Of a DNA stretch of 64,000 nucleotides, positions 49,239 to 63,108 are shown in pieces. The first letter of the stretch is position 1. Every line of letters starts with the position of its first letter. The notes below the pieces were generated by a model. That model was not told where the DNA came from and searched no databases. It saw nothing but the letters and a program-made list of their open reading frames with translations. The translations under genes and the position numbers were made by a program. Origin of the DNA: Rebecca billardiae RCC1528 (taxonomy: Eukaryota > Protista > Haptophyta); NCBI GenBank assembly GCA_965240325.2, contig OZ251240.1:1054001-1118000 (forward strand), read 5' to 3'.

Positions 49239-51215
49239 CTAGCTCCGCCTCGCCGCCGCCACCGCCGCATGATGCCGCTTATCCCAGCGCGAGAAGCCGT
49301 ACGTCACCAGCCGCATCCGCCGGTTGATCGCCGGCGAGTCCGGGAGCTCCATGCCGACCGCGATCGGCGCGAGCGCTGCAAAGGAGAGAGTGCACGCGCA
49401 CAGCAGTGCACACAGCAGCGCCGAGCGCGCGCGCGGCCGCCAGCCACTCGTGGCACGGTCGAAGGTGACGGCGGCGAGGAGCACGCAGAAGCCGAGCGCG
49501 GGCATGAAGTGGTACACGAACGCCACGCGCCCCACCAGCACGAAGGGCAGCCAGTTGCACAGCACGCCGAGCACGCACAGCCTCTCGTTCCACGCGCGGC
49601 GCGCCTCCGCCTCCTCCGCGCGCGCCGAGAGAGGCAGCTGCGCCGCCGCGGCGCGCCGCCGCGCGGAAGGGCGCCGCCCGGGCGCGAGAGCGTGGTACGC
49701 GGCGAGCGCGGCCCAGCGGAGGCCGCAGTACAGCGCGGCGGCCGACGCGAGCCGCCACGTCGTCGGGTTCCCGAAGAGCCAGATGGCGGCGGGCCCGCGC
49801 GTGGGCAGCCGGCCGGCCGCGCCGGCCGCGCCGGCCGCGCCGGCCGCACCGGAGCCAAGCGCGACCGCCCCTGCCTCGGCGGGCAGCTCGGCGCTGCGGC
49901 CCATGATGCGCGCTACGCGCTCGAGGAGCTTGCGCCCCGCGCCGCGCACGCCGCCCGTGCCACTGCTCACCCCCTTCGACCAGTACAAGATCGGCCGCAG
50001 CCCGAACGGCCACTCGTACCACGTCGACGAAAATGCATGCCCGCGCGACACGCCCGCGTTCGCCGTGAGCATGCGAACGTTAAGCTCGAGGTACAGTGTG
50101 ACGAAACCGCGGTGCGAGTTGGACGGGTCGGTGAGGGCGGTGTTGAACGAGCGGCTCATGAAGGCATCGCCCGGCCCGCTCGTGCGCACCAGCGCGAAGT
50201 GCACCGCGAACGCCGCCGCGTAGATCGCGGCCGGCAGCAGCAGCAGCAGCACAAAGCGCGCGGCAAACTCTGCGCCGAGGTCGTTGGACGCACGGCGCGT
50301 GGCGGTGCACGCGGCGGCGGCGGCCTCGCGCAGCCGGGCGAGGAGCGAGGCGGGCGCGCTCTTCGTCCGCGCCTCGTCCTCCACGAGCAGCGCCGCCGCG
50401 CGCCGCCTGTGCATCTCCGCCCGCGACGGCCAGCGCGCGCCGATCTGCGCGAGCAGCGCGCGCACAGACTCAATGCCTACCACCGCCATGCAGCCGAGGG
50501 CCGTCCATTTGGTAGAGGTGGCAAAGCCAATGGCCGCGCCGCAGAGCGCGAGCCAGCGCAGCCACGCGGCGGAGAAGGTGGGCGCCGCCTGCGCGCGCAG
50601 CGCCGCGTACAGCTGCGCTGCGTCGAAGAGCAGCATCGTCGCGTCCATCAGCAGGAGCCGCCCCTCGGTGAGGTGGGCCGTGTCTGTCAGGAGGAGCCAG
50701 CCGGCGAGGATGCTCGCGTGGCGCGAGCAGCCGAGCGCGGCGGCGGAGGCGGCGGTGAGCGGCACGATCAGCGTGGAGGAGAGCGCCGGCAGCGCGCGCA
50801 GCGCGAACAGGTTGAGCTCCGCCACCACCGGCTCGCCGATCCGTTCGAACTGCTGCGCCTGAAGCGCCGTCGGGTCGCAGCCGAGCCACGCGAACAGCGC
50901 GAGCAGCAGCTTGCCCATGGGCGGGTGGATGTCGAAGTAGTGCACGCCGCCGAGCGTGTCCCGCACGAACTTGCCAAAGTGCACCTCGTCGAATACCACC
51001 TCGCGCGGGTGCGTCAGGTACGAGAAGCGCGTCGCGGCGGCGAGCGCGCCGAGCGCGAGCAGGTCGATCGAGCGCACGCCGTCGTGACGCGCACGGGGCG
51101 GGTCGTCGGGCGGCGCGGATTTGGCAGCCGCGCCGTCGAGGCGCGCTTGGCGCTGCGCCTCGGCGTCGTCGAGGGCGCCGCCGCCCTCGCTCGGCCGCCG
51201 CCGCAGCCCGAGCAT
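49239..51215 (-). CDS. PMT: Dolichyl-phosphate-mannose:protein O-mannosyltransferase (PMT/POMT, GT39), lacking MIR domains
   Basis: VVFDEVHFGKF..YFDIHPPMGKLL; ATSTKWT; HAFSSTWYEWP..RPI; IWLFGNP; NWLPF..RVAFVYHFMPALGF. Confidence 0.92.
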   Translation of the reverse strand: MLGLRRRPSEGGGALDDAEAQRQARLDGAAAKSAPPDDPPRARHDGVRSIDLLALGALAAATRFSYLTHPREVVFDEVHFGKFVRDTLGGVHYFDIHPPMGKLLLALFAWLGCDPTALQAQQFERIGEPVVAELNLFALRALPALSSTLIVPLTAASAAALGCSRHASILAGWLLLTDTAHLTEGRLLLMDATMLLFDAAQLYAALRAQAAPTFSAAWLRWLALCGAAIGFATSTKWTALGCMAVVGIESVRALLAQIGARWPSRAEMHRRRAAALLVEDEARTKSAPASLLARLREAAAAACTATRRASNDLGAEFAARFVLLLLLPAAIYAAAFAVHFALVRTSGPGDAFMSRSFNTALTDPSNSHRGFVTLYLELNVRMLTANAGVSRGHAFSSTWYEWPFGLRPILYWSKGVSSGTGGVRGAGRKLLERVARIMGRSAELPAEAGAVALGSGAAGAAGAAGAAGRLPTRGPAAIWLFGNPTTWRLASAAALYCGLRWAALAAYHALAPGRRPSARRRAAAAQLPLSARAEEAEARRAWNERLCVLGVLCNWLPFVLVGRVAFVYHFMPALGFCVLLAAVTFDRATSGWRPRARSALLCALLCACTLSFAALAPIAVGMELPDSPAINRRMRLVTYGFSRWDKRHHAAVAAARRS

Positions 51216-51890
51216 TCTCGCCGGGCGCGTGCGCGGTGTCCGCGCAAGGCCTCGCCGTCGTCGACTGCGAGTGTCCGGCTGATCGCCTTGATTGATGAGC
51301 GACAAGTGCTTGCTCAGCACTGAGCTGGCGCCCTGCTGATCAACATCATGCACTGTTTGCATTTGCAACAACTCACTCAACTGCTTCACCCGCCGCCCAA
51401 CAGCTGCTGACAATTGTTCGAGCATCACAGCATTGTCAGTGATTCTGAGTCCCACGACATCATTGGCATGGCCTGGCCCTCGAATGTCTCAGACGTCTGG
51501 GCACCAGCAGCTGGCAGAGTCGCGAAAGACGACGCTGCGCTGAGTGCCCGTGGGCCAAGCCTTGCGTTCCCAACGAGGCAACGACGCGGCGCACGTGTAA
51601 TTTTGAGCGCGCGCAGACAGGACCCGGACCGGGCCCTTGGTCATCGGTGACGGTAGGAGGTCGCGGTGCCGCAGCGCCGCACCAACTCCAGGGCCACAAC
51701 GGCACTGGGCATACGAGAGCAACGCAGCCCCGTCATTGCTGGAATGCACTGCGGGGACTGGTGGCCAACCATGTGCGCGTGGGCTGCATGCGCTGACCCG
51801 ACCATGGAGTGCGCAGAGCTGTGCCCGCGAGGCAGCTCAGCAGCCGCACGCTGCAGTGGCATTCCAGTTGAGAACCCGACTGAAGGCCCA

Positions 51891-59600: not shown

Positions 59601-61475
59601 ATGGAAGACGAGCACGTGGTGGAGCTCCTGGCCTCTGACGGGAGCGTGCTGCGCAGGTACGCTCTCGATGCTGGCGAGACCACCTTCGGGCGTGAGCCGA
59701 ATTCGGCACGCCATCACATGGTCAACACCCACGCCGTCCGCGCGCTCATCTCGCGCAAGCACTGCGCGTTTGTGCGCGCGGCGCACCCGGACGACGCGGC
59801 GCGCGACATCGTCCACGTGCGCAACATGGGCATGAACGGGACGAGCGTGAACGACCGGCTTATCAGTCAGGGCACAGGTATCGCTCTTCGCGACCGCGAC
59901 CGCATCGCCCTCGGCGCGAAGCACACGGGCGACAAGGCGTGCGTCGTGTGGCTGCGGTACCGCGGGCCATCTGCTCTCGGCACCGTCCGTCAGAACGCGA
60001 ATGCTGCCGACGTCGGCCCGCGCGCCGACGTCCCGACGGGACCTGCGCGCGCACCGGTGCGCATCTCCTCACCGCCAACTGCCGCGATCGGTGCCGCGCC
60101 ACTTGAGGACTGGCAAGCGGAGGCGGCGACGACGCACGGCCCGGCCGCCGTCGGGCTGCCAGGCGCGCTGCCGCCGGCATCGGCTGCGGCCGTGCCGTCG
60201 CCCGCCGAGCTGCAATCTGTCGCGCTACTCGCGCGCACGGGGGCCACGCCACGCGTGCCCAAGCGTGCTCTCGACGCCGACGGGCCCTCCACGGACCGCA
60301 GCGACGGCGACGGCGACGGCGACAGGCGCGACCAGCGCGGCGATCGCAGCTGCGGCGCCGACAGCGACGGCAGCAGCCGCAGCGCGAGCGACGACGGTGG
60401 CGATAGCGGCGGCGAGGGTGCCCACGCCGCGTGGCCGTACCCCGGGTGGGAGCTCAAGGCGCGCAAGCGGCGGCAGCTCGCGCACGCGCCGCTCGCACGC
60501 TCCGGCGCCGCGCGCGGCGCACCCTCGGCCCGCGAGCGCAAAGGCAATCTCGTGGAGACTTTCGGAGGCCCGCCGTTCAGCGTGCTCGACGCCAAGCCCA
60601 AGTGGTGGCGCGAGCGGCACGCGTACTGGACGCGGCCGCTCGCTGAGGGCGGGTACGGCATCGACGGCTCGGACGGGCGCGCGGCCGGGCTCACCTTCGC
60701 CGGCAGCGTCGAGATGAAGGGCCACAACAACACGAGCGTCTTCGACCCCGTGCTGTGCGAGCAGCTCTACCGGTGGTTCGCGCCGGTCGGAGGCCAGGTG
60801 CTCGATCCGTTCGCGGGCGGCGCGACGCGCGGCTGCGTCGCAGCGCGGCTTGGGCTGTCATACTGCGGCATCGAGCTGCGCGCCGAGCAGGTCGAGGCGA
60901 ACCGCGCGCAGGCGCGCGCCATTGGCGAGGCGTGCAAGGCGGAGCGCGTGCCCTGGCTCCGGCCGGTCTGGATCCACGGTGACGCGCGCGACGTCTCGCG
61001 CTTCGCGCACGTGCCCACCACCGTCGACTTCGTCTTCAGCTGCCCGCCGTACTACGACCTGGAGGAGTACGGCGGCGGCGACGCGGACCTGAGCAGCCGC
61101 GCGCGCACGTATGACGAGTTCCTCGCCGCGCTCGAGCAGATCGTGCGCGACTGCCTCCGCCGGCTCAAGGTGCAGCGCTTCGCCGCCTTTGTCGTCGGCG
61201 AGATCCGGGACAAGCTCGGCTTCTGCCGGAACTTTGTGGGCGACACGATCCGGCTGTTTGAGCGGCACGACGGCGTGCGGCTGTACAACCACGCCATCCT
61301 CGCGCCGGCGCTGGGCACGGCGGCGCAGCGCGCGTCGACGGTGTTCGAGAACGGCAAGCTCGTGCCGACGCACCAGCACGTGCTCGTCTTCTACAAGCCT
61401 GAGCCGCGGCCGGGCGACAAACCGTGCCTCAAGGACATGGGCATCAACCCGCGGCGGCCGGTCGAGTGGACTTGA
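59601..61475 (+). CDS. FHA domain fused to a phage-type DNA amino-methyltransferase (N6-adenine/N4-cytosine class)
   Basis: FHA: FGR..ISRKHC..MNGTSVN..LRDRDRIALG. MTase: PPFSVLD, TSVFDPVLCEQLYRWF, VLDPFAGG (SAM-binding, 60804), GIELRAEQVEAN, FSCPPYYDLEEY (catalytic, 61038), FAAFVVGEIRD, KLVPTHQHVLVFYK. Confidence 0.9.
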   Translation: MEDEHVVELLASDGSVLRRYALDAGETTFGREPNSARHHMVNTHAVRALISRKHCAFVRAAHPDDAARDIVHVRNMGMNGTSVNDRLISQGTGIALRDRDRIALGAKHTGDKACVVWLRYRGPSALGTVRQNANAADVGPRADVPTGPARAPVRISSPPTAAIGAAPLEDWQAEAATTHGPAAVGLPGALPPASAAAVPSPAELQSVALLARTGATPRVPKRALDADGPSTDRSDGDGDGDRRDQRGDRSCGADSDGSSRSASDDGGDSGGEGAHAAWPYPGWELKARKRRQLAHAPLARSGAARGAPSARERKGNLVETFGGPPFSVLDAKPKWWRERHAYWTRPLAEGGYGIDGSDGRAAGLTFAGSVEMKGHNNTSVFDPVLCEQLYRWFAPVGGQVLDPFAGGATRGCVAARLGLSYCGIELRAEQVEANRAQARAIGEACKAERVPWLRPVWIHGDARDVSRFAHVPTTVDFVFSCPPYYDLEEYGGGDADLSSRARTYDEFLAALEQIVRDCLRRLKVQRFAAFVVGEIRDKLGFCRNFVGDTIRLFERHDGVRLYNHAILAPALGTAAQRASTVFENGKLVPTHQHVLVFYKPEPRPGDKPCLKDMGINPRRPVEWT

Positions 61476-61930: not shown

Positions 61931-62977
61931 CTACCGCGCACCGTCGCACACCGCGCCGCCAAAGGGCTCGTACCCCATGGGCTCTGCGTGCTCGCGCACG
62001 TGGTGCCAGAAGCGGCAGACAAAGTCGGGGTTTGTTCTCGCGCACAGCGAGTAGGCGCGCTCGCGCGTGACGAACGCGCCGCCGCCGTCGTCGTGCGGCC
62101 GCTTGATGCGCTGCGCGGCCGCGTCGGATAGCCTGAACGCGCACTCCAGCTGCGCCTCCGCCGGCACCATCTTGGGCGGCAGCTGGAGGAAGCCGACCAT
62201 CTGCCTGAGCACGCCAAGCCGGCGCGTGCGCGACGTGAGCGCCTCAAACGTCCACATGCCCAGCCGGCAGTTGACGGCGAGCTCGCGCCCGAGGTTGGGG
62301 TTGCGGAAGGGCGTCGGCGTGTAGCACTGCTTGCGCGAGAAATCGCGGTACCGGTGCATCGTCCGGTTCCACAGCTTGGCGAAGCGGATCCCGTCGCGCG
62401 CGAAGTCGTCCGCGTGGAACTTGCGCCTCGGGATCTGCGCGGTGTGGGAGCCGTATGGCGTGTGCTCGAGGTTGTACTCGGCGAAGAAGGCGTTGTACGG
62501 GTCGCGCACGACGGCGATCGCCGAGGTGACTGCGAGCATCCGCCACACTTTCGTGCGGTTCAACGCGGGCCACGGCCGGATCAGGCGGATGGGGAGCGCG
62601 CTCGAGAACTGAGCGTGATGAACCTTCACGACCACGACGTCGTGATCGACGCGGCCCTCGCCGGCGAAGCCTGCGGCGATGAGCCGCTTGTCCTTCTGGA
62701 CGGAGCCCGTGCGCACGGCTGTCGCGCGCTCGAGCAGCATGCGCACCATCGTGTTCCCGCAGCCGGGCACCGTCCATAGGATCGGCGGCGCGTACCGCTG
62801 CGCGCTGCCATCGCTCCCGATGAACTTGCCGCGATGGCGCAGGAACCGCGCCTGGGGCGAGGAGCAGCCAGCCGCTGCCTCGTCGGCGAGCGCGTCCGCC
62901 TCGGCCGTGCTCTCTGGCGGGGCCGTCGCCGCTGCCAAGGCAAGCAGCGCCACCATGGCAGGCGCGATCGCCGGCAT
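61931..62977 (-). CDS. WSCD-family sulfotransferase-like protein with signal/anchor peptide
   Basis: LWTVPGCGNTMVRMLLERATAVRTGSV..GFAGE..VVVKVH (5'-PSB-like) and AIAVVRDPYNAFFAEYN (3'-PB-like). Confidence 0.82.
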   Translation of the reverse strand: MPAIAPAMVALLALAAATAPPESTAEADALADEAAAGCSSPQARFLRHRGKFIGSDGSAQRYAPPILWTVPGCGNTMVRMLLERATAVRTGSVQKDKRLIAAGFAGEGRVDHDVVVVKVHHAQFSSALPIRLIRPWPALNRTKVWRMLAVTSAIAVVRDPYNAFFAEYNLEHTPYGSHTAQIPRRKFHADDFARDGIRFAKLWNRTMHRYRDFSRKQCYTPTPFRNPNLGRELAVNCRLGMWTFEALTSRTRRLGVLRQMVGFLQLPPKMVPAEAQLECAFRLSDAAAQRIKRPHDDGGGAFVTRERAYSLCARTNPDFVCRFWHHVREHAEPMGYEPFGGAVCDGAR

Positions 62978-63108
62978 GGGTGATCGACTGTCGACGGGCA
63001 AGCCCGGCGGGCGATGGCGGCGCGTGCTCCCGACGGCAACCGGCTACTTCGAGATTCAGATCTCCTGACCGATCTCGACATCATTCTCGTCGCGTTTCGA
63101 ATGCGCGA

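Follow-up and report, generated by a model that had tools for sequence, protein, structure and literature searches.

The closest described relatives of the gene discussed here are the FHA-fused N6-adenine methyltransferases that Iyer, Zhang and Aravind (Bioessays 2016, PMC4738411) set apart as 'Group-1 clade 6', a haptophyte-restricted group whose unpermuted catalytic domain was derived from phage ParB-terminase loci; the examples given are EMIHUDRAFT_95251 and EMIHUDRAFT_115516, and the text of that review names only Emiliania-like algae. We have analysed a stretch of 64,000 nucleotides from the haptophyte Rebecca billardiae RCC1528 (contig OZ251240.1, forward-strand positions 1,054,001 to 1,118,000; hereafter the window, whose own numbering is used throughout), which holds, at 59601..61475 on the + strand, a complete open reading frame (ORF) for an FHA-methyltransferase fusion protein of 624 amino acids plus stop.

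Like the Emiliania proteins of clade 6, the Rebecca protein has an N-terminal FHA domain, a long linker and a C-terminal, unpermuted amino-methyltransferase of phage derivation; the methyltransferase domains are 45% identical and fall in the same clade of our tree. All the features that mark the group (FHA fusion, unpermuted domain, origin in phage ParB-terminase loci and grouping with the Emiliania type) are found in it. It differs in its host, a haptophyte of very high GC content that belongs on the Pavlovales side of the tree, in being intronless, in its long branch and in having no SEEDExLRxFF linker motif. The gene is a new, divergent member of a family known from computation alone. What the original prediction for this locus, made from the DNA letters without database searches, picked out is a rediscovery: the fusion, its haptophyte restriction and its ParB-terminase origin were all published in 2016 (PMC4738411).

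Other known systems share parts of this design. The ParB-methyltransferases of phages (phiFL3A gp36, Vincenzo gp1 and Listeria phage B054 gp77; PHROG 12517/498) have the same methyltransferase with all of its signatures, including the loop [ST]-C-P-P-Y; they carry an N-terminal ParB domain and lie in packaging loci, whereas the algal protein has FHA, a disordered linker, a eukaryote-specific aromatic/basic motif and a tail. The beta-class enzymes of PF01555 (TTHA0409/2zie, CcrM, M.MboIIA and M.PvuII) are alike in their S-adenosylmethionine (AdoMet) and catalytic loops and share P-P-Y, but they are permuted, with motif IV first and motif I last, and begin the catalytic loop with D, N or S; in the family of the window protein motif I precedes motif IV and the loop begins with Cys. 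Trm11, TrmN and Trm14 resemble it in unpermuted order, in an xPPY loop and in fold (Z 17-18, root-mean-square deviation 2-3 Å, ~180 residues), but are THUMP-associated, whereas the window protein has no THUMP domain and only a weak profile likeness to them (22 bits). Finally, N4CMT of bdelloid rotifers is a bacterial N4-cytosine methyltransferase fused to a chromodomain. It follows the same logic of an acquired prokaryotic amino-methyltransferase joined to a eukaryotic recruitment domain; the rotifer enzyme carries a methyl-lysine reader, and the haptophyte protein a predicted phosphothreonine reader.

The fusion gene and its haptophyte family

The ORF opens with an ATG, 9 nucleotides downstream of an in-frame stop, and runs across 1,872 nucleotides with no frameshift and no internal stop; it is intronless as read, and the identical gene is also present on an independent Logan contig from ERR14847148. 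Both domains were assigned with the curated Pfam cut-offs (gathering thresholds): FHA (PF00498) at amino acids 27-105 scores 32.2 bits against a cut-off of 20.7 (E 1.5e-7), and N6_N4_Mtase (PF01555) is matched in two partial stretches with 39.8 bits against 26.7. As to the ORF the original prediction was accurate: the frame is uninterrupted, FHA domain, linker with basic patch and methyltransferase are all present, and each motif that it had picked out is present, namely GR (amino acids 30-31), SRKH (51-54) and NGT (79-81) in the FHA domain, KARKRR (286-291) in the linker, and PPFSVLD (324-330), FDPVLCE (381-387), YRWF (390-393), DPFAGG (402-407), S-CPPY (480-484), DLEEY (486-490), VVGEIRD (531-537) and THQHVLVF (590-597) in the methyltransferase.

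The composition of the gene is that of its surroundings. The window has 67-88% GC per 2-kb bin; the GC content at third codon positions (GC3) of the fusion gene is 0.893, the same as in a neighbouring protein O-mannosyltransferase gene, and rises to 0.935, strongly coding-like, in the methyltransferase part, and the intergenic DNA on either side falls to 56-66% GC. In the linker, too, GC by codon position follows a coding-like pattern, in the same frame as the rest of the ORF. The fusion gene is host-like in composition and looks native; it is a nuclear haptophyte gene and, to judge from its reading frame and domains, a real and intact one.

The FHA domain occupies amino acids 6-121 (59616..59963, + strand; Pfam core 59679-59915). 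In an AlphaFold2 model built on a 41-row alignment it is a confident beta-sandwich, with a predicted local distance difference test (pLDDT) score of ~90, and Foldseek matches the modelled fold to the FHA domains of KIF1A and MEK1. In characterised FHA domains the loops corresponding to G30-R31, S51-R52-x-H54 and N79-G80 make the phosphothreonine contacts. Among 10 haptophyte proteins, residues G30, R31, S51, R52, H54, N79 and G80 vary little or not at all, and the predicted phosphothreonine-binding surface of the window protein is intact. When the window FHA domain was used as a phmmer query among 256 fetched proteins it recovered no other FHA domain, because its sequence is too divergent, and the architecture of those proteins is therefore taken from Pfam.

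Between the two domains lies a disordered, low-complexity linker (amino acids 122-316, 59964..60548, + strand; AlphaFold2 pLDDT ~30 over amino acids 126-314). About 35 residues before the methyltransferase it contains the motif YPGWE-L-KARKRR (amino acids 280-291, 60438-60473, + strand), the local form of an aromatic/basic element that reads YPGWELKARKRR in the window protein, YPG[WF]..[KR]ARKR in the Pavlovales type and G[FW]..(K/R)PR(D/E) in prymnesiophytes. In all haptophyte copies this element lies equally far ahead of PPFSVLD, and the prokaryotic ones lack it; the conserved basic patch may serve nuclear localisation or contact with DNA. The protein ends in a tail of low pLDDT (amino acids 601-624, ending in PVEWT; 61401..61472, + strand), and tails of this kind, with a Trp close to the terminus, are common to the haptophyte copies and rare in prokaryotic ones. 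A second linker motif, the acidic S-E-E-D-E-x-L-R-x-F-F, was seen between FHA and methyltransferase in the prymnesiophyte orthologues P0010, P0019, P0033, P0039 and P0306, with a counterpart, SSEEDPALLRL, in Pavlovales sp. CCMP2436 (P0258, amino acid ~182); it might act as a short linear motif for docking or phosphorylation.

The same architecture occurs in Prymnesium parvum (610 amino acids), in two proteins of Emiliania huxleyi CCMP1516 (658 and 683 amino acids), in Pavlovales sp. CCMP2436 (KAJ1635763.1, 613 amino acids), in several uncultured haptophyte sequences and in a 629-residue intronless ORF of a Logan assembly. The survey of haptophytes that the original prediction had proposed thus finds the fusion conserved in Emiliania, Prymnesium and Pavlovales, with the binding residues intact. 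For ~610 codons each, the gene takes up 5,243 nucleotides in Pavlovales and 2,678 in Prymnesium, and tblastn recovers both in several exons; these two orthologues are therefore intron-bearing nuclear genes. In two Logan assemblies of a Pavlovales-like alga (L023:1701-3867 and L024:1701-3867) the FHA part (423 amino acids) and the methyltransferase part (288 amino acids) were called as adjacent ORFs 28 nucleotides apart, the likely cause being a short intron or a frameshift in the linker. In one uncultured haptophyte protein (P0033, amino acids ~470-535) ~60 unrelated residues interrupt the catalytic loop between C-P-P and Y-Y-D-L-E; the insertion resembles an intron that a prokaryote-style gene caller translated as coding sequence, and such an intron would sit exactly in motif IV.

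For phylogeny we used IQ-TREE with LG+C20+F+G4 and posterior mean site frequencies (PMSF) on 69 rows and 308 columns; the root was not inferred. The 19 eukaryotic rows, with Emiliania, Prymnesium and Pavlovales among them, form one clade at 100/100 and go back to one common origin. Within the clade the prymnesiophytes (100/94) and the Pavlovales type (100/97) separate, and the window protein joins the latter at 94/84. Since the gene is found on both sides of the split between Pavlovophyceae and Prymnesiophyceae, it was acquired before that split. The donor cannot be named because the prokaryotic backbone of the tree is without resolution, and that the transfer went into haptophytes is deduced from distribution, there being ~1,700 clusters overall against ~19 haptophyte sequences.

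A phage-type methyltransferase with an unusual catalytic loop

The methyltransferase domain (amino acids 317-600, 60549..61400, + strand) was delimited by PHROG, PF01555 and AlphaFold2, which models it as a confident Rossmann-type domain (pLDDT ~95; predicted template modelling score 0.88 when modelled alone). Over amino acids 312-604 it matches phrog_12517 at E 2.5e-80 and phrog_498 ('DNA methyltransferase') at E 4.9e-60, and a tblastn search of 50,697 phage records with this domain found 29 records with 36-42% identity over ~90% of its length, the matching genes being annotated as 'ParB N-terminal domain-containing protein', 'ParB-like nuclease domain protein' or 'DNA adenine methyltransferase'. 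The ParB-methylase fusion genes of Mycobacterium phage Vincenzo and Enterococcus phage phiFL3A are followed immediately downstream by the genes for the small and the large terminase. HMMER, run exhaustively against 1.84 billion cluster representatives, gave 1,679 family clusters at E<=1e-30; those inspected among the ~1,700 are prokaryotic or phage and mostly ParB-bearing, and in a word-indexed search most matches combine PF02195 (ParB) with PF01555. In IMG/VR the best viral contig reaches at most 46% identity, with none closer.

These comparisons show an unpermuted methyltransferase of PF01555 type that derives from a phage or prophage ParB-methylase adjoining terminase genes, and in which FHA, a eukaryotic domain, together with a long disordered linker now stands in place of ParB. 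The link that the original prediction had drawn to phage and prophage ParB-methylases is confirmed by the PHROG and tblastn matches and by the ParB fusions next to terminase genes, and the profile search and phylogeny that it had called for recovered phage and prokaryotic relatives with the eukaryotic copies as a single clade. Its picture of a domesticated phage-type enzyme stands in respect of phage/prophage family, single eukaryotic clade, conserved fusion and host-like composition, though not as a new discovery.

Among the top-scoring non-self matches were three proteins of 716-724 amino acids (P0002, at L025:8001-10175, P0003 and P0004) with two complete tandem copies of the methyltransferase domain; P0002 has in addition a C-terminal C2H2-like tail and sits on a 93-kb metagenomic contig. 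We considered that the zinc-finger-like tail might mark a second eukaryotic lineage, and rejected this on account of the phage-like packing of small same-strand genes on that contig. M.EcoGII was also considered as a family member and set aside, being instead an ordinary beta-class DPPY enzyme.

The domain begins with the family signature PPFSVLD (amino acids 324-330, 60570..60590, + strand), followed by W336, R339 and W343; of 264 family domains at least 87% keep this region, and 98-99% keep P325, W336, R339 and W343. Motif I, the AdoMet-binding loop DPFAGG (amino acids 402-407, 60804..60821, + strand), is 97-100% conserved at each of D402, P403, F404, A405, G406 and G407 in the family domains, and aligns with the FxGxG loop of TTHA0409, CcrM and MboIIA. 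The alignment to these PDB sequences is crossed: the AdoMet loop of the window protein (amino acids ~380-431) pairs with the C-terminus of the beta-class enzymes and the catalytic loop (amino acids ~460-536) with their N-terminus, so that the window protein has the plain, unpermuted Rossmann order of motif I followed by motif IV.

Motif IV, the catalytic loop S-C-P-P-Y (amino acids 480-484, 61038..61052, + strand), has Cys at the position usually held by D, N, S or H, and this Cys481 pairs with the Ser of TSPPY in TTHA0409/2zie. Across the 264 family domains the Cys is 98% conserved and P482-P483-Y484 100%; the loop reads SCPPY in 198, TCPPY in 45, ACPPY in 8 and TSPPY in 4 (Ser being present in 4 of 255 members). 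The Cys is, on this alignment, a peculiarity of the whole family, phage and algal, and not a defect of the window copy. No publication pairing 'CPPY' with methyltransferase was found in our literature search.

Substrate, constraint and alternative explanations

Several findings weigh against reading this protein as a phospho-targeted DNA methyltransferase of phage descent, and each is set out here beside the alternative that it touches. The enzyme might act on RNA (for example on N2-guanine or N6-adenine of tRNA or rRNA) or on a protein amide, since phage ParB ancestry says little about a eukaryotic target. Its best folds are those of m2G (N2-methylguanosine) tRNA methyltransferases: in VIA-align the closest structures are TrmN (3tma, Z 17.7), Trm11 (6zxv and 5e72, Z ~17) and Trm14 (3tlj, Z 16.9), all likewise unpermuted, with generic Rossmann methyltransferases following at Z 14-15, ~2 units lower, and Foldseek gives the identical order. 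The sequence of aTrm11 also gives a weak but sequential match from motif I through motif IV, and shifts of substrate from DNA to RNA have been recurrent after eukaryotes acquired such enzymes (PMC4738411). The literature searched gave neither a demonstrated substrate nor an experimental report for any member of the family, phage or algal.

The structural ranking is biased, because sequential aligners need the same chain order and cannot fairly score the permuted beta-class DNA enzymes. Against the PDB the family profile matches TTHA0409 at E 5e-18 (68 bits) through both halves, as compared with 22 bits for aTrm11; its other matches include 8s9n, a DNA N4-cytosine methyltransferase (1e-6), CcrM (1.6e-6), M.MboIIA, M.PvuII and HpyAVI. 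PF01555 is above its cut-off, whereas neither Trm11/UPF0020 nor THUMP has a Pfam match in the window protein even at E<=1, and PPR, KH and CCCH RNA-binding domains were also looked for with Pfam and not found. Lacking both a THUMP-type domain and sequence kinship, the protein does not belong with Trm11, TrmN and Trm14, which it resembles in fold and topology. A grouping with Trm11-like RNA methyltransferases would speak against the original prediction by its own account, and on this structure and sequence part: TrmN, Trm11 and Trm14 are the best structural matches, and the profile scores favour the DNA enzymes. From the profile comparisons we conclude that the domain is sequence kin of the DNA amino-methyltransferases and shares with Trm11-type enzymes the unpermuted topology only. 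Prokaryotic members carry the DNA-associated ParB domain and lie in phage packaging loci, from which context the substrate is most likely DNA; an enzyme working on RNA or protein we regard as unlikely.

The catalytic loop itself is a further point against the reading as a DNA amino-methyltransferase. The strand-4 motif of amino-methyltransferases has been defined as [DNSH]PP[YFW], Ser being typical of N4-cytosine enzymes (PMC4738411), and the window protein has Cys481 in place of that first polar residue; the Pro-Pro-aromatic loop and an FxGxG-type AdoMet loop are both present. Methylation of N6-adenine and of N4-cytosine are both possible, and the Ser-like Cys together with the best PDB relatives leans slightly towards N4-cytosine. 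Our search found no study of DNA amino-methylation, as N6-methyladenine (6mA) or N4-methylcytosine (4mC), in haptophytes.

The window copy might instead be a fast-evolving, relaxed or decaying paralogue, its frame held open by high GC and its function as a phospho-regulated enzyme lost. Its terminal branch is 1.28, about three times the ~0.4 of other Pavlovales-type copies; it departs from the family at 10 of the 96 columns that at least 85% of members conserve (S408A, V409T and G600P among the changes); Gly replaces the usual Ser two residues before N79 when its FHA domain is compared across the 10 haptophyte proteins; and the acidic SEEDExLRxFF linker motif of many orthologues is missing. 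The long branch and the missing motif leave some room for relaxed constraint. Against decay, the protein keeps the other 86 of those 96 columns, including all of the ~30 invariant positions and both catalytic loops; among the residues kept are E387, W392, D402-G407, R410, G411, Y421, G423, Q430, N434, C481-Y484, L487, E488, Y490, F507, L522, R536, H591 and Q592. The unbroken frame of 1,872 nucleotides, the coding-like GC3 and the confident AlphaFold2 models of both domains point the same way, and we think decay improbable.

An unrecognised intron, or distinct transcription starts, in the 585-nucleotide linker might yield two separate products. The linker is of low complexity, and its continuity as an ORF is weak evidence when taken alone, because GC-rich DNA is often stop-free and open frames are cheap at 72% GC; on one Pavlovales-like contig, moreover, a prokaryote-style caller did split FHA from methyltransferase. 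This explanation seems to us very improbable in view of the codon-position GC of the linker, which fits the same frame, and of the order FHA-linker-methyltransferase, which recurs in single ORFs or gene models in at least 8 haptophyte proteins of both classes. That the gene stems from contaminating bacterial or phage DNA, or was lately inserted by a virus, was ruled out by composition, context and phylogeny and can hardly be entertained: the nearest non-haptophyte relatives of the methyltransferase do lie on prokaryotic, phage or metagenomic contigs, but the window protein is FHA-fused like the haptophyte copies and sits within their clade at 100/100, no viral contig exceeds 46% identity, and the gene matches host genes in composition and has host-type neighbours in the 64-kb window.

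Genomic surroundings, proposed action and significance

One of those neighbours, 8 kb upstream of the fusion gene, is an intronless protein O-mannosyltransferase gene (49239-51455, - strand; PMT and PMT_4TMC, E 2e-41), whose best named match is from Diacronema lutheri (40% identity), followed by Prymnesium parvum; this places the host among haptophytes with kinship, though no close one, to the sequenced Pavlovales. On the other side, tail-to-tail with the fusion gene and 456 nucleotides from it, lies an ORF of 356 amino acids (61931-63001, - strand) with a coding-like GC3 of 0.91 and no Pfam match at E<=0.01; inspection by eye shows motifs like those of sulfotransferases (PGCGNT..., RDPYNAFFAEY). 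Between 56 and 64 kb of the window we found no direct, inverted or terminal repeats of note of the kind left by mobile elements, and capture by such an element was rejected on this ground. An Rfam scan of the window gave no RNA family. Farther upstream a single ORF of 7,604 codons runs from 22459 to 45273 (+ strand), its part between 24 and 32 kb having 87% GC and a strong skew of C over G.

Having weighed these alternatives, we think it rather probable that the gene encodes a haptophyte FHA-fused methyltransferase of Group-1 clade 6, derived from a phage ParB-methylase, and we propose a mode of action for it. The C-terminal domain would bind AdoMet through DPFAGG, and a flipped-out base would be held by the C-P-P-Y loop for methylation of its exocyclic amino group. 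The FHA domain would tether the enzyme to a partner protein that bears a phosphothreonine, so that a kinase would govern where or when methylation takes place; phospho-dependent eukaryotic targeting may in this way have taken over from the DNA targeting that ParB provided in the phage ancestor.

We also put forward, as a speculation that we ourselves think improbable, that the near-invariant Cys is the mark of a family whose reaction, in phage and algal members alike, is not ordinary sequence-specific 6mA but perhaps methylation of N4-cytosine, which would suit a genome of ~70% GC, or of another exocyclic amine, and that the haptophyte enzymes might lay such a mark only at FHA docking sites made by a kinase, for example where chromatin is damaged or being replicated, or on the DNA of an invading virus.

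Emiliania, Prymnesium and other haptophytes are major primary producers of the ocean and hosts of giant viruses. A family conserved in them since before the split of Pavlovales and prymnesiophytes is an obvious candidate for the writer of haptophyte DNA amino-methylation. The window adds to it a divergent member from the Pavlovales side, which moves the acquisition back to an early point in the history of haptophytes, and an intronless copy that could be cloned directly from genomic DNA; the analysis adds the previously unremarked, family-wide Cys of the catalytic loop, with which the base specificity of the phage and algal enzymes becomes easily testable. The FHA domain predicts control of the methyltransferase by phosphorylation, and we know of no established example of such control of a DNA methyltransferase. 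If a kinase does gate the mark, this would be the first kinase-gated DNA amino-methylation system.

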